From Rebecca billardiae RCC1528 (lineage: Eukaryota > Protista > Haptophyta): 64,000 nucleotides of DNA. Under the pieces are notes generated by a model that did not search any database, had not been told where the DNA came from, and worked only from the letters and a program-made list of their open reading frames with translations. A program made the translations under genes and the position numbers. Position 1 is the first letter of the stretch, and each line of letters begins with the position of its first letter. Location of the stretch: contig OZ251230.1 in NCBI GenBank assembly GCA_965240325.2, forward strand, positions 1 to 64,000, read 5' to 3'. This document shows positions 3,216-12,426 of this stretch, piece by piece.

Positions 3216-5464
3216 ATGTCCGCGCCCAAGCCGTGGACCCCGCAGGAGGTGCGCGGCTGCGGCGGTGGCGGCGGCTGCTGCTGCTGCGCGCGCCCTCGGC
3301 GCTCGGCGCCGGGCGCGCGCGCGCAGCGGCTCACGCGCGCGGCGCGGCCGCTCGCGCGCGCGCGCCGTGTTGCGCGCGCGCGCGCAGGTCGAGGACTACC
3401 TCTCGCGCTTCCGCGTGCAGGAGCTGCTGTCGGAGGCGGTGAACGACGCCGTGACCGCCAAGGCGACCGACCCGGTCTCGCACATCGCCGACTTCTTGTC
3501 CAAGGTCGGCTCCGCAGACCCGCTCGGCGTGGAGGAGGTGCCGACCACGCCGATCGACGGCCAGAAGCCGGGCACGTCGGGGCTGCGCAAGAAGACCAAA
3601 GTGTTCATGGAGGGCGCGTACCTGCACAACTTTGTGCAGGCCACCTTCGACACGCTCGTCGCCGAGGGCGTGCCCGTCTCGGGCGGCACGCTCGTCGTGT
3701 CGGGCGACGGGCGCTTCTACAACAAGGAGGCGATCCAGATCATCCTCAAGATGGCGGCGGCGAACGGGGTGGCGCGGCTGTGGGTGGGCACGGACGGGCT
3801 GCTCTCGACGCCCGCGGTCTCCGCCGTCGTGCGCGCGCGCGAGGGCGGCTTCAAGCCCTTCGGCGCGTTCATCCTCTCCGCGTCGCACAACCCGGGCGGG
3901 ATCGACGAGGACTTTGGCATCAAGTTCAACATGGCCAACGGCGGGCCCGCGCCCGAGAAGGTGACCGAGGGGATCTTCGCGCGGACCAAGAGCATCAGCG
4001 CGTACAAGATCTGCCCCGCCTTCCCGCACGTCGAGCTCGCCGAGCCCACCACGCGCGCCGTGCCCAAGGCCGACGGCTCGGGCTCGGTGAGCGTGGAGGT
4101 GTTCCCGTGCACGGAGGACCACGTGGCGGTGCTCAAGCAGTGCTTCGACTTTGGCCAGATCAAGGCGCTGTGCGCGCGGCCGGACTTCTCGATGGTGTAC
4201 GACTCGATGAACGGCGTGCAGGGGCCGTACGCCAAGGCGGTGCTCTGCGACGAGCTCGGCCTGCCCGCGTCGAGCCTGATGAACGCCGTGCCCAAGCCCG
4301 ACTTTGGCGGCCACGCGTCGCCCTCGCACGGCCACGCCGACCCCAACCTGACGCACGCGGTCGAGCTGATCGCCAAGATGGGGCTGGACAAGATGGGGAA
4401 CAAGGTGAACACGCCCGCGCCGCCGCCCAAGTTTGGCGCCGCGGCCGACGGCGACGCCGACCGCAACATGATCCTCGGCGAGCAGTTCTTCGTCACGCCG
4501 TCCGACTCGCTCGCCATCATCGCCGCCAACGCGGACGCCATCCCCTTCTTCAAGAAGAACGGCGGTACGCACGCACGCCCAGCGCACGCCCAGCGCACGC
4601 CCAGCGCACGCCCAGCGCACGCCCAGCGCACACCCAGCGCACCAAGGGACCCGCGCCGCGCTCGGCGCGCGCGCGCGCGCGCTCACCCGCGCCGCCCGCA
4701 CGCGCGCGATGCCGCGCGCAGGCCTCAAGGCGTGCGCGCGCTCGATGCCGACCTCGTGCGCGCTCGACCGCGTCGCGGCCGCGCGCTCGATCGAGGCGTT
4801 CGAGGTGCCGACCGGCTGGAAGTTCTTTGGCAACCTGATGGACTCGGGCACGGCCGCGTTCCCCAAGGGCAAGACGTACACGCCCTTCCTCTGCGGCGAG
4901 GAGTCGTTCGGCACGGGCTCGAACCACGTGCGCGAGAAGGACGGCATGTGGGCGGTGCTCGCGTGGCTGCAGATCCTCGCCGCCAAGAACGGCGACGCGG
5001 CCAAGCCGTTTGTGAGCGTCGCCGACATCGTGCGCGCGCACTGGGCGGAGTTTGGGCGCAACTACTACGCGCGGTACGACTACGAGGCCGTGGACAAGGC
5101 CAAGGCGACCAAGATGATGGAGGAGATGGCGGCCAAGGCGGGCGAGAGCGGCACGGAGTACGAGGGCGGGTACACGCTCGCCAAGCTCGACGAGTTCACG
5201 TACAACGACCCGGTCGACGGCTCCGTCTCGCAGCACCAGGGCATCCGGTACGTGATGACCGACGGCAGCCGCATCGTCTTCCGGCTCAGCGGCACGGGCG
5301 TCGACGGCGCGACCGTGCGCCTGTACCTCGAGAAGTACGAGCCGCCGTCGGGCAACCTCGACCAGCACGCCTTCGACGTGGTCAAGCCGCTCGCCGCGAT
5401 CGCGCTGCAGGTGAGCAAGCTGCCCGAGTTCACCGGCCGCACCGAGCCGACCGTCATCACCTGA
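3216..5464 (+). CDS. PGM: Phosphoglucomutase with N-terminal RIIa/Dpy-30-like docking domain (exons 3216-3248, 3388-4564, 4722-5464)
   Basis: Motifs GQKPGTSGLRKK, catalytic LSASHNPGG, metal loop DGDADR, GEESFG, REKDG and C-terminal PTVIT. GT-AG introns restore the frame. Confidence 0.96.
4573..4642 (+). repeat. 11-bp tandem repeat (GCACGCCCAGC) x~6 in PGM intron 2
   Basis: Read directly from the sequence. Confidence 0.9.
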
Positions 5465-6413
5465 GCGCCTCCGACGCACGTGACAGTCGTGACACGTCCG
5501 CCTGCGAAACGGCCGCGGGGCGCGGGCAGCGCCGCTGCGCCGGCCGCCGCAGCGTCCAGCAGGCGCGACACTGCGCGCGAGGACCGGTGGGATATGCGCG
5601 CAGCGCGCAGCAGCAGGCGTGCGCGCGCATCATCCGTCGTCGTCACAGTGATGACAGTGTCGGCGCCGCATCACGCGACGCGATCATCGGACGCCGCAGA
5701 CTCAGCGCTCGTGCGCATCGCCGACCTACTTACCGGTTACCCGGTCGTCCCGCGCTTCATCAGCCTATGGCATGCAGCTCGTCGCAGCATATATAGCGTC
5801 CGCCATGATCGATCATCATCAAATCAATAATCGCGTATACGCATCGTCATATCACACCACAGCAACGATTTCTTTTTTAAAGCGGCCGTTAAGGAAACTC
5901 CAACAAATTGATTTTCGGCCGTTAACGGCTCAACCCGGGCGTCCGGCCACAATCCCGAGAGCCTCCTCGCGCCGCTCGGACCAACCGACGGTCGTCCAGA
6001 GCTCCGACGCGAAGTTGAAAGTCCCGGTGCGCGCGTGCGCCGTGCGTGCGCGTGTGGCGGCGTCCACGTCGCCGCTGCGCCACCGGTGCTCTAATCGCGG
6101 GTGTTCCCCAACCTATCCCCCACCTGCCCCGCACCCGCTCCGCGTCCCGACCCGCCACGCCGATCTACTTTGCTAGGTCTGTTCGTAACACGGTGCGAAT
6201 CTGCGCCCGCCTGCACGCCGCCGCGCGCGGGGATGCAGGAAGTGTATGGAGGGGCGCGGAGTTTGTATTCAGGCGGCGGGTTACTCGTGATCCACGCACA
6301 TGCTCAGCGGGAACGCTTACTTTTGCATGGGTGACCGGGAATTTGCATCAGACTAACTTGCTGCGGCTGCGCCCGGCGGCGGCCGCGCGGGACCGCGCTC
6401 GCCGCGCGCAGCA

Positions 6414-7271
6414 ATGACGACGGCTGTGCTTACCGTGGGCAAGGGCAAGCGTTCCTGCGCGAAGCCGAAGAAGGTCAAGCTGCAGCGGAAGGGCGGCTAC
6501 GGCATCGGGCGCAAGGTCTCTGCCGCATCTGTGCGGCGGCGCATGGCCGCGGCGGCCGCGGAGAAGGCGGCTGAGCACGAGACGCTCATGCTGCGCGCGC
6601 GCGAGGCGGCGAGCGAGGTGGACCACTCGATCATGCCGAACGAGAACTACCTGGCGGAGGTCAAGCGCAAGGTCAACAACTTCGTCGCCATCAAGGGCAG
6701 CCGGAAGAAGGGCAACCTGCTGCGCAAGGCCAAGCTGGCGCTGTTCCCGCGTGACGCCCTCTACTCGCCGATGTTCACCTCGCTCGACGACCAGGGCGTC
6801 GTGCACGAGACGCGAGAGAAGGACCGCACGCGGCGCACCGTGAGCTCGTACCAGCCCGAGCGCATCTCGACGTGGCTCAACCTGGGCATGCGCCGCGTCC
6901 CGAAGCCGCTGCGGGCGAACGCGCTCGGCGGCGCGCGCACGGACCGGCACCTCTCGGCGATCAACACGGTGCACTCGCTCTCGATCGAGCACACCGAGAT
7001 GCATCGGCTCGATCCGGACGGCGCGTACCAGCAGTTCGCGCACGTGCGCGTGGGCGTGATCTCGCTCAACGCGCAGGGCGGCCTGCACGCGCCACAGGAC
7101 GCGCAGGGCGGCGTGAGCGTCGACGCCGAGCGCTACGCGCTGATGCAGCCATGGCGCTTCAAGAAGGAGAAGGGGCGCGCTGACGTGAGCGGCGAGCTGC
7201 TCAAGGTGTGCGCGCAGGGCGTCTCGATGCGCCGCGGCGGAGGCGGGGCTGGCGGCGCACGCCGTCTGTGA
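6414..7271 (+). CDS. Transposon ORF1, basic 285-aa protein of unknown function
   Basis: Protein-like, non-shadow composition with Lys/Arg-rich NLS-like N-terminus; lies between the TIRs. The 3' end is uncertain because a coding-like tail continues to 7417 in another frame. Confidence 0.65.
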   Translation: MTTAVLTVGKGKRSCAKPKKVKLQRKGGYGIGRKVSAASVRRRMAAAAAEKAAEHETLMLRAREAASEVDHSIMPNENYLAEVKRKVNNFVAIKGSRKKGNLLRKAKLALFPRDALYSPMFTSLDDQGVVHETREKDRTRRTVSSYQPERISTWLNLGMRRVPKPLRANALGGARTDRHLSAINTVHSLSIEHTEMHRLDPDGAYQQFAHVRVGVISLNAQGGLHAPQDAQGGVSVDAERYALMQPWRFKKEKGRADVSGELLKVCAQGVSMRRGGGGAGGARRL

Positions 7272-7636
7272 CGAAGGGCCCGTCGGAGCTCACGGGCGCG
7301 CCGCCGGCAGCGCCTGCCGCGGCGCCCGCCGCGGCGGCACCGGCGGCGCCGCCCGAGTCCGACGTCTCACGGCGCAAGCGCGCGGACTGGAAAGCGCGCC
7401 GCGCGCAGCGCGAGTAGCTGACCGCCACTCGCCGAGCAGCGAGCAGCGCCCGATGGCGTCGCGCGCCAGCTGGTGACGGCGCGGTCGCGCCGCATCCCCC
7501 CCTCGATCTCTCTGCCCTCGATCCCACGCATGCCCATCTGCATTCTCATTCTCAGCCTCTCTCGCATGTTCCAGTCCTCGGTCTCACGCCCGGCCTCTGC
7601 GCCGACGCGCCATCCGATCCATCGTCCGCCGCCGTG

Positions 7637-10600
7637 ATGCCCTACGCGGTCGCGGACACCCAGCCGCTGCCTCCGTTGGGGCCGCCGCCGCTGCCGTCGC
7701 TTCCGCCACCGCCGCAGCTGCCGTCGGCGCCTCCGCACCTGCCTCCGCCGCTCGTGCAGCCGCCGCAGCCGCGGCCGCGGCCGCGGCCGCGGCCGCAGCC
7801 GCAGCCGCTGTCCTCGCCGCATGATGCCGCCCGTCCACCGACCGCGCGCGCGCTCGCTCTCCTTCGAGCTGATGGCGGCGAGGCGGCGGCATCAGCCGCC
7901 GCCGCCGCCGCCGATTTGTCTCCCGCCGTCGTCGCTGCCCGCTTCTCGTCTCTTCCCGCTCACGCCGACCACCTCGTCTTCTCGCCCGCCACTACCAACG
8001 CCTCCTCCGCCTTGAGCTTTCCTGCTGCCGCTGCGCCGTCGCCCGCGGTCACGCGCAGCGCCTCCCGCCAGCCCGCGCCGCCACTCCTCCTCGCTGGCGC
8101 GGCGGCGCAGCCGTTCGTCGGTGGGTCGGCGGAAGAGCTGCTGCCGCCGAGGTCACCTGCCGTCGCCTCGCCCGCCTTCATGTCGCCGCCGCCTGCCGTG
8201 CTGCTCTCGGCCGCGCCCACCCGCCAGCGGCCTCTCACGCGCTCGGCTGGCAGCGTGGCGCCGACGCCCGAGGCAGAGGCGGACGAGCAGACAGCACGGG
8301 GTCGAAGGCGCATGGCCGAGCTGCAGCACGTGGCCGAGCTCGAGCAGCAGTTGCGGCGCTCGCACAGCACGCGCAGCGTCCCTTCCGAGCTCGAGCTCAC
8401 CTCGCTGCGCACACGTGTGACCGAGCTCGAGCACTTCAACGGCGAGCTCGAGCGCGAGCGCGACGACGCGGTGCGGCAGCGCGAGGACATCGTCAACTCG
8501 GCCGCCGTCGATCTCGAGCCGGTTCTCGACGTGGTGATCGCCGCCGTCAAGCTCGAGTGCGAGAACATCGAGCGCGAGGCCCTCGACCGGATCGCCGCCG
8601 CGCGCGCCGCCGCTGCTGCCGCGGAGAGGCGCGCTGTGCTCGCCGGGTACCGCGCCGGGCACAGCGCGGATGCGCGCACCCGCCACGACGCCGAGGCGGA
8701 GCAGGCGCAGGCGAAGCTTCGGCGCGATCTCGAAGAGGCGAACGCGCGGGCCGCAGCTGCGCAGCGCGCCGCCGACGCGCAGCGCGATCGGGCCCTCGAG
8801 TTGGAGCGCCGCCTCACCGCGACCGAGCACATCGCCGCTGACGCGCTGAGCGGCGTCGAGCACGAGCTCGCGGCTGCGCTGCACGCGCAGCAGCTGCTCG
8901 AGCAGCAGTGCGCGCACGCCCAGTCGCTCTGCGACGAGCAGCAGTCGCAGCTTGTCGAGCTCAAGCGCGACAAGGACGCCGCGCGCAAGCGCGCCGACCG
9001 AGCCGCCGGCAAGTTCGAGCACCTCGCCGAGCTGAACGGGCTGGACGGCGCTCATCGGCAGCGCGCTCAGCGCCCATCTCTCTCGGTCTCGAGCAACGCG
9101 TGCCGCAAGCGCAGGCGGGGGGAGGCGGACCATATCGAGCACATCCTGCGTGGCACGCCCGACGACGTGATGGACCTCGTGCTGCACGAGATGCTCGAGG
9201 GCGCAGACGACGGCTCGCGCAAGCCGTGGGCGAGGCACGCCTACCTCCAGCAGCGCCGCGGCGCAGTGGGCGTTGTGCGCGAGATTCAATCTCATCAGAC
9301 GCACCACGACGTCGCCGGCTACCTCGTCTCGAAGAACGTCACGGACGCGCAGTTCGACACGTGGCGCGAGTGGGTGGGGAAGGAGATCCACCCGGTGACG
9401 GGCGAGCACTCGGCTCGCACCGTCTTCCGCGGCGGCTTCGGCCGCGAGCCGATCCGCCACCCGATCCCGCCGCCGGCGGCTGGCTCTCGAGAGGTCGCGC
9501 AGCGCGATCGCGAGCACGCGGGCGCGGGCGTGCTCATGATCGGCAGCGAGTCGGCGGCGCGGCCGTGGGCGCAGGCCGTGCACGCCGTGCTGGATCGCTC
9601 GGAGCGCAACGGCAAGTCCGCGCGCCCGCGCGGGCAGCCGCACGTCCTCCTCCTCTCGGCGGACGCGGGCAACACGGCTCACTCGCGCACGGCCACGATC
9701 GCCATCGTGCGCAACGGCTGGGGCGTCAACTACGGCGCGCTCGCGTCGTCAGAGGCGATCGCCATCTCGGAGCGGCCGGACTCGGACATGTCCGAGTTAT
9801 GGAGTGCGCACGCCGACGCGATCAATGACGTGATCCGGAGCGGCCTGCTTCCGCCGCGACCGACGCCGCCTGCTGCCGCCACCGCACGTGTGGCCGGCGC
9901 GGCCGGCGGCGCGGCCGCGGCCGTCACAGCCGGCGCGGCCGGCGGCGCGGGCCGCGGCGAGGCCCGCGGCGCGGCCGGCGGCGCGGCCGGCGGCACGGCC
10001 GGCGGCACGGCCGGCGGCACGGGCGGCGCGGGCGGCGCGGGCGGCAGCGGCAGCGGCGTGGCTGGCGGCACCGCCGGCGCTGGCGTCCGCGCGGCCGGCG
10101 GCGCGGCCGGCGGCGCGGCTGGTAACGCGGGCGCGGGCGCTGGCGGCGGCGCGGGCGGCGCGGGCGGCGCGGGCGGCAGCGGCAGCGGCAGCGGCGTGGC
10201 TGGCGGCACCGCCGGCGCTGGCGTCCGCGCGGCCGGTGGCGCGGCCGGCGGCGCGGCGAGCAGCGCGGCTGGCAACCCGAGCGCGGGCACGGCCGGCGGC
10301 GCGGCCGCCGCGGCCGCCGCGGCCGCCGCGGCCGCCGCGGCCGGCGGCGCGGCCGGCGCGGCCGGCGCGGCCGGCGCGGCCGGCGCTGCCGGCGCGGCGG
10401 GCGGCGCGGCCGGCGGCGGTTTTGGCGGCGGCGGCGAGGCGGCCGACTACGCGGAGGAGCAGAAGGCCATCATCACGTACACCGGCGATTATGTCAACCT
10501 TGCCAGCCTCGCCGGCCAGGGCTCGCACAACGTCTCGCCGCTCCGCTTCAACGTGTGGGCGGTCAAGGAGGCGGGCGCGGACGGCGGCTCGCCTCAGTGG

Positions 10601-11953
10601 CGGCTGCGCACGTACAAGCGCGCGCGCGCGCTGTGCCACGCGGACCCGGGCGTGACGTGCCCTGCGTGCAAGGTCACGCCTGCCGACCAGGGCGAGTGCG
10701 ACGCCGAGATGACCAAGCGCCGCCGCCTTCTCGCCGACGACTCGAAGGACGCCGAGCGCATCGTCGACCAGAAGCTGCACGAGAACCAGTGGCTGCTACC
10801 GCAGCTGGAGCTCGAGCACGTCAACTACTTCCCCGGCATCATGCACTTCAAGCACGACACTTTCAAGCCGGTGCTGTCGGCGCTGTGGAGGGAGGTGGAC
10901 GAGCTGTACGGCCGCGACGCGCCGCTCACCAAGTACGACCTGATCGTCCTGTTCAAGAACGCGGGCGTGCCTGTGCGAGTGCCCAAGCGGCGCACGCGCA
11001 CCAACGAGATCGGCGTGCCCGACCTCCGCGGCGACGGCATCTCGCTGCTGCGCACGCACGCGGTCTTCTGGGCGTTGGTGCAGGTCGTGTGGAAGATCGA
11101 CGCGGATCTCGACGGCGCGAGCAGCGCGGGCGCGGCGGACAGCGGCGACGAGGACGCGCGCATCTCGGACATGCAGGACGAGGAGGAGCGCGAGATGATG
11201 GACGAGATCGGCTTTGACGACGAGGCGCAGTTGAAGGCCGAGATCGCGGACATGCCGCGCATGGCACTCTTCTGCCGCCTGCTCATGCTCACGTGGCAGC
11301 TGCACGACCTCGTCTCCTCGCGCGGCTACACGGACGATGACGATGGCCGCGCGAAGCGTGCGGACGAGGTTGAGGCAGCCGCGACGGCGTGGGTCGAGGC
11401 GCTCGACCTGTTCGTCCTCAAGCCGGTCACCTCGCAGTACAAGACGATCGCGCGGTTCGTCTTGCCTCTGCTGATCAGGCGGTGGGGCCACCTCGTGCAG
11501 CTCGCGGACGAGCAGGTGCAGGAGCACTTCGTGCAGGTGACCAAGCGGGCGATGCCGCTCGTGAACGCGCGCAAGTCGCTCGACTCGTTCGTCCGCGAGT
11601 ATGCCGAGGGGAAGAAGTCGACGGTGCAGCCGCACATCTCGACGGCCGCGCAGCTCCTGCGCCGCGTGTCGCTTGCGACGTGGGCGGAGGAGGAGTTCGG
11701 CGACAAGGTGCGGCGGCTCTGGCTGAAGAAGGAGGGCAAGCGGCAGCGCGAATGGCAGCGCAAGGCGAAGGCCGGCGCGCACGACCTGGTCGACGAGTAC
11801 ATCGCGGCGCGCAAGCTCGTGCGCGAGGAGGCTGGGCTTCCGGAGGAGGACTTGTCGGCACTCAAGAGCAAATTGAGGGCGGCGGCGCGCTCGGCCTCGG
11901 CGACGGTGAGCGACGGCGCGGATGTCGCGCGCGACGGCAGCGGGGCTGGGTAG
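7637..11953 (+). CDS. Putative DDE transposase (~1438 aa)
   Basis: Candidate triad LLLSA-D-AG (9662), YTG-D-YVNLASLAG (10487), DEQVQ-E-HF (11522). Also CPAC (~10658), PGIMH (~10835), and an N-terminal Pro-rich then coiled-coil region; lies inside the TIRs. Confidence 0.72.
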   Translation: MPYAVADTQPLPPLGPPPLPSLPPPPQLPSAPPHLPPPLVQPPQPRPRPRPRPQPQPLSSPHDAARPPTARALALLRADGGEAAASAAAAAADLSPAVVAARFSSLPAHADHLVFSPATTNASSALSFPAAAAPSPAVTRSASRQPAPPLLLAGAAAQPFVGGSAEELLPPRSPAVASPAFMSPPPAVLLSAAPTRQRPLTRSAGSVAPTPEAEADEQTARGRRRMAELQHVAELEQQLRRSHSTRSVPSELELTSLRTRVTELEHFNGELERERDDAVRQREDIVNSAAVDLEPVLDVVIAAVKLECENIEREALDRIAAARAAAAAAERRAVLAGYRAGHSADARTRHDAEAEQAQAKLRRDLEEANARAAAAQRAADAQRDRALELERRLTATEHIAADALSGVEHELAAALHAQQLLEQQCAHAQSLCDEQQSQLVELKRDKDAARKRADRAAGKFEHLAELNGLDGAHRQRAQRPSLSVSSNACRKRRRGEADHIEHILRGTPDDVMDLVLHEMLEGADDGSRKPWARHAYLQQRRGAVGVVREIQSHQTHHDVAGYLVSKNVTDAQFDTWREWVGKEIHPVTGEHSARTVFRGGFGREPIRHPIPPPAAGSREVAQRDREHAGAGVLMIGSESAARPWAQAVHAVLDRSERNGKSARPRGQPHVLLLSADAGNTAHSRTATIAIVRNGWGVNYGALASSEAIAISERPDSDMSELWSAHADAINDVIRSGLLPPRPTPPAAATARVAGAAGGAAAAVTAGAAGGAGRGEARGAAGGAAGGTAGGTAGGTGGAGGAGGSGSGVAGGTAGAGVRAAGGAAGGAAGNAGAGAGGGAGGAGGAGGSGSGSGVAGGTAGAGVRAAGGAAGGAASSAAGNPSAGTAGGAAAAAAAAAAAAAAGGAAGAAGAAGAAGAAGAAGGAAGGGFGGGGEAADYAEEQKAIITYTGDYVNLASLAGQGSHNVSPLRFNVWAVKEAGADGGSPQWRLRTYKRARALCHADPGVTCPACKVTPADQGECDAEMTKRRRLLADDSKDAERIVDQKLHENQWLLPQLELEHVNYFPGIMHFKHDTFKPVLSALWREVDELYGRDAPLTKYDLIVLFKNAGVPVRVPKRRTRTNEIGVPDLRGDGISLLRTHAVFWALVQVVWKIDADLDGASSAGAADSGDEDARISDMQDEEEREMMDEIGFDDEAQLKAEIADMPRMALFCRLLMLTWQLHDLVSSRGYTDDDDGRAKRADEVEAAATAWVEALDLFVLKPVTSQYKTIARFVLPLLIRRWGHLVQLADEQVQEHFVQVTKRAMPLVNARKSLDSFVREYAEGKKSTVQPHISTAAQLLRRVSLATWAEEEFGDKVRRLWLKKEGKRQREWQRKAKAGAHDLVDEYIAARKLVREEAGLPEEDLSALKSKLRAAARSASATVSDGADVARDGSGAG
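9890..10440 (+). repeat. Gly/Ala low-complexity tract with an internal ~100-bp direct duplication, inside the transposase ORF
   Basis: GCGGCCGGC-type repeats; block GGAGGAGGSGSGVAGGTAGAGVRAAGGAAGGAA occurs twice (~10020-10120 and ~10150-10255). Confidence 0.85.
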
Positions 11954-12426
11954 CGGGAATCAGGCAGCTGACGGTTAGGGCATGCAGGGGGGACTAGTCG
12001 CGCGCGCGCGCCGCCCGCTGGGCGCGCGCGCGCAGCGCATAGTAATTTTCCGTAAAATAATCCGGCCGATGGACACGCTAACGGCCGCTTTAAAAAAGAA
12101 GTCGTTGCTGTGACTGATGTCGTGACAATACATCTAGACGCGATGACGACAGCAGCTAGCTCGTCGAGGCTCGAGCGGCAACAGGTAGCGCATCGCGATC
12201 GTGGCACCCGGCTGTCAATCCCCGTGGCGCCGGCGGTGCTCCGTCGTGCGCACTGGCTCGGCGCTGCGGCGGCGGCACGCGCGGCCGGCTGCCGCGCGGT
12301 CCGGTCCGGCGGGTGGGCTGGTGGCGGCGCGCGGCACGCCCACGTACGCGCGCGCCCGCCGCCAGCCTCCCTCGCTCGTCAGGGCTGAGTCGCCCCTAGC
12401 TAGCGCGCTCCCCTCGCCGGGGCGGC

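Follow-up and report, generated by a model that had tools for sequence, protein, structure and literature searches.

A CACAG-ended, apparently recently active DNA transposon with a predicted RAG1/Transib-like transposase core in the haptophyte Rebecca billardiae

The window analysed here, a 64,000-nucleotide stretch at the start of contig OZ251230.1 from Rebecca billardiae RCC1528, contains a 6255-bp element (5858-12112) in which two open reading frames, ORF1 and ORF2, lie between terminal inverted repeats (TIRs) (Table 1). The TIRs are 35 bp long and agree at 34 of 35 positions, with one mismatch; no such TIR match arose in 100 shuffles of the window. The element ends are CACAG...CTGTG, and CACAG is also the opening five bases of the RSS/Transib heptamer. 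The initial annotation, made from the sequence alone, had reported near-perfect TIRs beginning CACAG, AC on both flanks and an uninterrupted ORF of ~1440 aa, all of which were found again; the uninterrupted frame spans 7634-11953 (1439 codons, first ATG at 7637), and the second ORF is located upstream of it. The inner TIR motif CGGCCGTTA occurs four times in the window, where 0.44 occurrences would be expected, and three of the four are inside the element ends. A T-rich tract in the TIR was considered as a possible RSS-like nonamer and dropped, as its strand and spacing appeared ill-fitting.

Table 1. Map of the element (window positions; ORF2 residues are numbered from the GTG at 7634)
Feature	Position	Strand	Evidence or remark
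Left target site duplication copy, AC	5856..5857	.	same dinucleotide past right end
Left TIR, begins CACAGCAACGA	5858..5892	+	pairs with right TIR
Subterminal direct repeat, inner TIR motif CGGCCGTTA	5916..5924	+	motif count
ORF1, 285-aa accessory protein	6414..7271	+	open reading frame upstream of ORF2
ORF2, putative transposase, 1438 aa from first ATG	7637..11953	+	open reading frame
Predicted RAG1-like core, ORF2 residues 609-1363, broken by Gly/Ala repeat	9458..11722	+	AF2 model
D677 codon, proposed first catalytic Asp (D1), S-A-D-A-G	9662..9664	+	conserved 12/12
Tandem 9-12-bp repeat between D1 and D2, coding for a disordered insert rich in Gly and Ala	9892..10418	+	
D952 codon, proposed second catalytic Asp (D2), T-G-D-Y-V-N	10487..10489	+	conserved 13/13
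C(2)C motif, C1009-P-A-C1012	10658..10669	+	conserved 12-13/13
M-H-x-x-H motif (H1071, H1074), start of long helix	10841..10855	+	H1071 conserved 13/14
E1293 codon, proposed catalytic Glu, A-D-E-Q-V-Q-E-H	11510..11512	+	conserved 7/8 in alignment A1
Right TIR	12078..12112	-	pairs with left TIR
Right target site duplication copy, AC	12113..12114	.	repeats left flank

The perfect 34-bp TIR end (0 mismatches) occurs 90 times in the 72-Mb genome, and the reversed control pattern 0 times. The genome contains at least 10 coding copies, ~99.95% identical, and ~30 copies of a non-coding 3.5-kb relative; median identity was 99.95% for full copies and 99.75% for short copies. The autonomous and 3.5-kb subfamilies are identical over the first 51 bp and the last 43 bp and 10-13% diverged elsewhere. 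Among 8 full-length copies examined, 7 retain an intact ORF2; one copy, L046, has a premature stop. The C-terminal 450 aa of ORF2 are 100% identical across 10 genomic copies, and all 7 full-length copies carry an identical ORF1; the length of the Gly/Ala repeat within ORF2 varies among copies by a 9-bp or 6-bp deletion. From this copy identity and the intact ORFs the element looks recently active, in agreement with the earlier suggestion of a young, possibly active family. Diverged paralogs are also present in the same genome, at C20:11312-12412 and C13:2821832-2822413.

Mirage elements generate 2-bp target site duplications (TSDs) and EnSpm elements 3-bp TSDs, and En/Spm carries two ORFs (TnpA/TnpD). 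Among 40 paired copies of the present element, the TSD was 2 bp in 30, 3 bp in nine and absent in one, so that a 2- or 3-bp TSD flanks 39 of the 40; the 2-bp TSD of the initial annotation stands for the majority and does not extend to the nine copies with 3 bp. A 5-bp TSD was required by none of the 40 copies, longer matches being confined to TA or GT microsatellites. TSD sequences vary (ac, at, gt, ct, ga and others), and insertion sites are AT-rich, with 68-69% AT in the adjoining 10 bp against 25% AT in the window. Sharp boundaries with identical TIRs were seen at more than 40 places on more than 25 contigs, with short duplications that differ from site to site. The search for an empty site or excision footprint of the window copy, proposed along with the original reading, found none in this single assembly; the flanks of this copy are unique in the genome, and hence there is no paralogous empty site.

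An ORF2 search of 1.84 billion representative proteins returned 28 matches, of which 27 are credible relatives. The relatives come from marine eukaryote data, and one is a Pavlovales protein. Plant CACTA proteins, though abundant, were not reached by this exhaustive phmmer search. ORF2 and its parts matched nothing in Pfam (hmmscan, E<=10), including Transposase_21 and the RAG1-family models, apart from a spurious Gly-rich match, and ten ORF2 homologs likewise gave no Pfam match, except for an fn3 false positive in P0021, which was dropped. Against PDB sequences, ORF2 as a single sequence generated only Gly-linker noise, and the family profile had 0 matches at E<=10, RAG1 and Transib chains included. 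A word-index search with the C-terminal region of ORF2 gave no match, its profile version re-found family members only, and the ESM Atlas provided no usable lead for ORF2. By sequence, the family thus matches no described family in Pfam, the PDB or the representative proteins, in line with its initial description as possibly unclassified. A related metagenomic element, L071, has perfect 33-bp TIRs beginning CACTG, an upstream ORF of the same size and position as ORF1, and AT-rich flanks (tca / atc).

The spaced D, D and LIRRWGHL..ADEQVQEH motifs pointed out in the initial annotation are present and coincide with those that the family alignment shows to be conserved. In a template-free AlphaFold (AF2) model of ORF2 (m31ac5635bd5f), the core has pLDDT 80-96 and the element order beta1-beta2-beta3-alpha1-beta4; D677 falls within predicted strand beta1 (model residues 191-202), D952 immediately follows predicted strand beta4 (model residues 465-472), and E1293 begins a predicted helix. 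The E and Q of the A-D-E-Q motif are invariant in alignment A4. The Gly/Ala insert, ~170 residues within the RNase H domain, has pLDDT <50 over model residues 287-449 and is replaced by a Cys-rich segment in most homologs. The C(2)C motif is located ~55 residues past D2, and three His are conserved, H1002, H1049 and H1071. Conservation together with the predicted model indicates that ORF2 is very probably a DDE transposase with D677/D952/E1293 as the candidate triad.

Model residues 130-884 superposed on residues 490-1008 of mouse RAG1 with Z 20.9, 419 residues aligned and an rmsd of 4.7. The VIA Z values for the AF2 model were 20.9 for RAG1, 18.5 for BbRAGL, 17.1 for HzTransib, 11.9 for the P element transposase and 8.4 for Hermes. 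The top ~45 Foldseek matches were all RAG1, BbRAGL or HzTransib; RAG1 was matched again (Z 19.3) by a wide search independent of Foldseek, and the BFVD viral fold library gave no match. Taken over the comparisons, the predicted core superposes on RAG1 with Z ~19-21 over ~405-419 residues and on HzTransib with Z 13-17. In contrast to this structural likeness, ORF2 is only ~10-12% identical to RAG1, BbRAGL and HzTransib, with no sequence match, and differs from them in that its RNase H domain is interrupted by the 170-residue Gly/Ala insert; nothing in the element could be recognised as a RAG2-like partner. ORF2 is thus predicted to have a RAG1/Transib-type core architecture with an RNase H-like DDE domain, the outcome anticipated for the structural check against RAG1 and HzTransib.

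ORF1 did not match Pfam, gave no usable lead in the ESM Atlas, and yielded a poor AF2 model (pLDDT 56.8) whose fold search generated no credible match. A metagenomic homolog, P0051, is 50% identical to ORF1. Judged by these sequences, ORF1 is an accessory protein conserved in relatives of the element; by analogy with the second En/Spm protein, it may bind DNA or have a regulatory role.

The CMCT clade unites EnSpm/CACTA, Mirage, Chapaev, Transib, Plavaka, ESTA, Lanisha and RAG1 (Kojima 2025, PMC12730594), and its traits are C(2)C, H(3-4)H, CA..TG termini and 2-5-bp TSDs (PMC12730594). The element resembles this clade in its predicted DDE/RNase H fold, its C(2)C, its CA..TG termini and its 2-3-bp TSDs. 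It differs in that the H(3-4)H motif was not seen in the family alignment, in which the sole paired His are those of M-H-x-x-H, with a spacing of 2, and upstream of E1293 there is no conserved pair of His; it also differs in its haptophyte-type algal host and in showing no detectable sequence similarity to the listed lineages in the Pfam, PDB and representative-protein searches. The fungal ESTA transposons are EnSpm-like, have TA TSDs and resemble RAG1 by HHpred (PMC12730594). They share with the element a 2-bp TSD and a RAG1 link that is remote and at the level of structure only, whereas the element has no fixed TSD sequence, no TET/JBP gene and an alga as host.

We regard the element, with a probability of roughly 0.8, as a cut-and-paste DNA transposon from a GC-rich alga that is autonomous, has been active very recently and belongs to a previously unclassified CMCT lineage. 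The initial reading, EnSpm-like ends combined with a Transib-like protein, was right, because an RNase H-like fold is predicted and many TIR-bounded copies exist; the ends proved to have mixed TSDs. Since the CMCT grouping already permits EnSpm/Mirage-like ends with a Transib/RAG1-like core (Kojima 2025, PMC12730594), the combination indicates a lineage that is new within an already recognised supergroup. The family is accordingly most probably a new algal branch of the CMCT group rather than a new kind of element, as judged from Pfam, PDB and representative-protein searches and from comparison with solved structures.

A possible, if somewhat unlikely, alternative is that the family is a very divergent member of CMC proper, of the Mirage or EnSpm type, and that the RAG1-like fold is common to any CMC transposase, appearing as such because RAG1 and Transib are the sole solved relatives. 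The PDB match lists contain no CMC structure, which would make RAG1 the nearest solved fold by default. The 2-bp TSDs are Mirage-like and the 3-bp TSDs EnSpm-like, the termini are CAC (CACTG in L071), the transposase is large as in both groups and accompanied by a second ORF as in En/Spm, and C(2)C is located past the second D. Against this, Transposase_21 and related Pfam models remained unmatched even at E<=10, plant CACTA proteins stayed out of reach of the exhaustive phmmer search, and the C(2)C at ~55 residues past D2 goes with a His spacing unlike the published H(3-4)H. The element further differs from both Mirage and EnSpm in mixing TSD lengths inside one family and in an ORF1 with no recognised family similarity. 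It is more doubtful still that the family forms its own superfamily-level lineage between CMC and Transib/RAG1, hosted by haptophytes, with a whole RAG1-type core and ORF1 as a partner.

Membership of the Transib superfamily, or a direct sister relationship to the Transib/RAG1 line outside animal hosts, is improbable. It would account for RAG1, BbRAGL and HzTransib being the top structural matches over ~370-420 residues, far past the RNase H domain, and for the CACAG shared with the heptamer. However, the TSDs are 2-3 bp rather than the 5 bp of RAG1 and Transib, terminus bases 6-7 are CA rather than TG, the 1438-aa protein has a long N-terminal extension and is joined by a second ORF, and no RAG1/Transib sequence similarity was detected even by the family profile at E<=10. 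Finally, it is hardly credible that the copies are non-mobile members of a host gene family scattered through the genome, or products of segmental duplication, or that the family is already dead: the single assembly shows no empty site, footprint or polymorphism and L046 has its premature stop, but identical TIRs bound the many sites described above, each with a different short duplication, the copies are near-identical, and the deletion-type non-coding subfamily has only the ends in common.

For the transposon of a new CMCT lineage, the following mechanism can be proposed. The ORF2 enzyme would bind the conserved 43-51-bp element ends and cleave at the CACAG termini, probably via a hairpin on the flanking DNA by analogy with RAG and Transib. 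Reinsertion would take place in AT-rich DNA with a 2-nt, sometimes 3-nt, stagger, and the same enzyme may also mobilise the 3.5-kb non-coding relative, which has the same ends.

The known working of such elements is unchanged by this family. For annotation, ~45 genome repeats that sequence libraries would leave unclassified are explained. As a small, apparently active element that targets AT-rich DNA and has defined 43-51-bp ends, it could also be used as an insertional mutagen in haptophytes. Transib and RAG have been studied mostly in animals, and the element described here, intact and apparently live, adds a transposon with a predicted RAG1-type core in a unicellular alga remote from animals. 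The family could help to root the CMC/Transib/RAG1 tree and reveal ancestral parts of the RAG1 architecture; if it were indeed a lineage of its own, it would provide a non-metazoan, apparently active model for the origin of the RAG1-type recombinase architecture.

The element (window 5858-12112, 6255 bp) had been described initially as ending in near-perfect terminal inverted repeats (TIRs) starting CACAG, flanked by AC and carrying an uninterrupted frame of about 1440 aa, and all of this was recovered (see table). The pairing of the two TIRs was absent from shuffled versions of the window (0/100 shuffles with a match), and AC was present on either side. With a G+C content near 75%, the window yields long open frames cheaply. 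Even so, the last 960 residues of ORF2 are of ordinary protein composition, and homologs were found elsewhere.

Features of the element in window coordinates, with ORF2 residues in the text numbered from the GTG at 7634
Feature	Position	Strand	Description
Left TIR	5858-5892		Starts CACAG; 35-bp inverted repeat with the right end, one mismatch
ORF1	6414-7271	+	285 aa
ORF2	7634-11953	+	Uninterrupted frame; first ATG at 7637; 1438 aa
Gly/Ala repeat	9892-10418		Tandem 9-12-bp repeat encoding a ~170-residue Gly/Ala insert; replaces the Cys-rich segment of most homologs
Right TIR	12078-12112		Partner of the left TIR, 35 bp

The collection of TIR copies proposed in the initial annotation yielded 90 occurrences of the 34-bp end (46 forward, 44 reverse), each with 0 mismatches, in the 72-Mb, 41-contig genome from which the window derives; a reversed control pattern gave 0 occurrences in the same 72 Mb. 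Forty paired copies were retrieved for comparison. Seven were full-length (6246-6255 bp), with a median pairwise identity of 99.95%, and the window copy differed from four of the others by just 2-3 bases. ORF1 was identical in all seven, ORF2 was intact in all but one of the readable full-length copies (7 of 8; L046 has a premature stop), and a translated search found the C-terminal 450 aa of ORF2 100% identical at 10 genomic places, in keeping with the young age first proposed. A single-base difference at window 7415, T in the window copy against C in each of the six other full-length copies, gives the window copy an in-frame TAG within the spacer that precedes the ORF2 ATG. The other copies lack this stop, and their ORF2 frame continues open for about 78 codons further upstream, into the end of ORF1.

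A 3.5-kb short form, present in about 30 copies (median pairwise identity 99.75%), aligns with positions 1-1037, 3595-4752 and 5618-6255 of the element. Its identity to the long form is only 79-90%, so it is a non-coding relative derived from a diverged master rather than a fresh deletion. The first 51 bp and last 43 bp are identical between the two forms, the signature of ends kept constant by a shared transposase. The short copies form a partner family that is non-coding but has these ends in common with the long form. A solo left end was located at G000:C23:970800, 255 bp after a complete short copy (G000:C23:966992-970545), and several further solo ends lie on contigs C1, C5, C15, C16, C22, C33 and C35. 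The C-terminal region of the transposase also has diverged paralogs at G000:C20:11312-12412 (33% identity) and G000:C13:2821832-2822413 (26%), which lie in frames open for 1293 and 1677 aa, respectively, so this genome contains older lineages of the same family.

The 2-bp target-site duplication (TSD) first read from the AC flanks held for 30 of the 40 copies, but nine had a 3-bp duplication unreadable as 2 bp, and one had none. The duplicated bases showed no fixed sequence. The sole paired copy without a TSD (L047, G000:C30:1294518-1298142; gaa / cga) may be a product of recombination between two copies. The 10 bp adjoining each insertion were 68-69% A+T, compared with 25% for the window, indicating that the element picks AT-rich islands. 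Copies lay somewhat nearer contig ends than a uniform spread predicts (median relative distance 0.147 vs 0.25 expected; KS p 0.014, 46 sites). The look-up of an empty site for the window copy found no paralogous one in the genome, since its flanks are unique there. The copies are those of a multi-copy element with defined boundaries, near-identical sequence and short TSDs. Three copies contain unrelated insertions of 1.4, 2.0 and 3.3 kb (L070, G000:C13:2585839-2590841; L054, G000:C36:832331-837975; L055, G000:C38:179074-188699), each about 50 bp inside an end, within an AT-rich subterminal stretch. AT-rich islands thus seem to be targets for other mobile elements of this GC-rich genome as well.

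Pfam searches with ORF2 and its parts gave nothing even at E<=10, and no solved structure was matched by sequence. When the C-terminal 450 aa of ORF2 were searched exhaustively with phmmer against 1.84 billion representatives, 28 hits were returned, one of which (P0021) was dropped as an fn3 false positive. The others came from marine eukaryote transcriptomes (MMETSP), marine metagenomes and a hypothetical protein of Pavlovales sp. CCMP2436, so the family appears, from these sequence matches, limited to haptophyte-type algae, and its host is probably one of them. The closest outside homologs, P0001 and P0029 (68% identity over the matched stretch; alignment A4), skip the catalytic core: a coiled-coil segment resembling ORF2 residues ~230-330 runs straight into the C-terminal region. 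A related organism thus has a derivative with an internal deletion, which parallels the 3.5-kb form.

The 6.7-kb metagenomic contig L071 encodes a more distant homolog (~21% identity to ORF2) in a 5957-bp element with AT-rich flanks, enclosed by perfect 33-bp inverted repeats starting CACTG. By eye, its TIRs and those of the window element have in common the terminal CAC-[A/T]-GC and, roughly 30 bp from the end, an inner CGTTAAG. An upstream 296-aa ORF matches ORF1 in size and position. The like ends and gene order indicate that the plan of the element has been kept on both sides of a deep split within the family. Together with a partial metagenomic homolog (P0051, 50% identical), this ORF identifies ORF1 as a real, conserved second gene; a structure model of ORF1 was poor and matched nothing.

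The spaced D, D and EQxxE motifs noted at the outset were conserved in the family alignments, as S-x-D-A-G (D677), T-G-D-x-x-N-x(5)-G (D952) and N/D-E1293-Q-x-Q-E. Also conserved were H1002, C1009-P-x-C1012, H1049, M-H1071-x-x-H-N and an invariant Pro. The alignments thus show that the acidic triad is conserved and that a C(2)C motif is present. Between the two Asp, most homologs have a Cys-rich segment, where ORF2 has about 170 Gly/Ala residues; the length of this repeat varies in frame between copies, by 9 bp (L044, L055) or 6 bp (L046).

A template-free AlphaFold2 model of ORF2 residues 480-1439, built from a 35-sequence alignment, had a mean pLDDT of 65.8 and a pTM of 0.61 (core 80-96, Gly/Ala insert disordered). 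Its predicted order of elements is beta1-beta2-beta3-alpha1, insert, then beta4; beta1 carries D677, D952 comes immediately after beta4, and a helix begins at E1293. Such a layout is usual for RNase H-like DDE enzymes. Essentially all of the first 45 rows of Foldseek against PDB were RAG1, amphioxus RAG1-like and HzTransib chains. A second look with VIA matched the model (130-883) to mouse RAG1 490-1007 (Z 20.9, rmsd 4.7, 419 aligned), followed by BbRAGL (Z 18.5, 426), HzTransib (Z 17.1, 370), P element transposase (Z 11.9, 302), Hermes (Z 8.4, 284) and ISCth4 (Z 8.3, 224). A Foldseek-independent wide search again listed RAG1 (Z 19.3, 403), BbRAGL (Z 18.4, 413), HzTransib (Z 13.2, 328) and P element transposase (Z 11.4, 291), above a background of Z 9 or less. 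The match of the model extends far beyond the RNase H domain. The initial reading of a CMC/Transib(RAG1)-like transposase holds, and the core is predicted to be RAG1/Transib-type, though any CMC-type enzyme might give the same result because RAG1 and Transib are the only solved relatives.

ORF2 would bind the conserved ends and cut at CACAG, most likely by way of a hairpin formed on the flanking DNA, like RAG and Transib. Insertion into AT-rich DNA would then proceed with a stagger of 2 or 3 nt, and ORF1 may assist or regulate. Assignment to Transib by its usual features fails on TSD length (2-3 bp vs 5 bp in Transib) and sequence similarity, of which there is none. EnSpm is not recognisable either, ORF2 having no Transposase_21 match; Mirage/EnSpm is closest in TSD and gene plan. 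Members of the CACTA/EnSpm-Mirage-Chapaev-Transib (CMCT) supergroup have in common CA..TG termini, TSDs of 2-5 bp, and the C(2)C and H(3-4)H motifs (Kojima 2025, PMC12730594). The window's family has the triad, C(2)C, termini and TSDs of this supergroup, but in place of the H(3-4)H pair its three conserved His are spaced otherwise. Within the supergroup the family may sit inside CMC, beside Transib or on its own. The finding is real: the element represents a new lineage, but one within a supergroup already known, and is no new kind of element.
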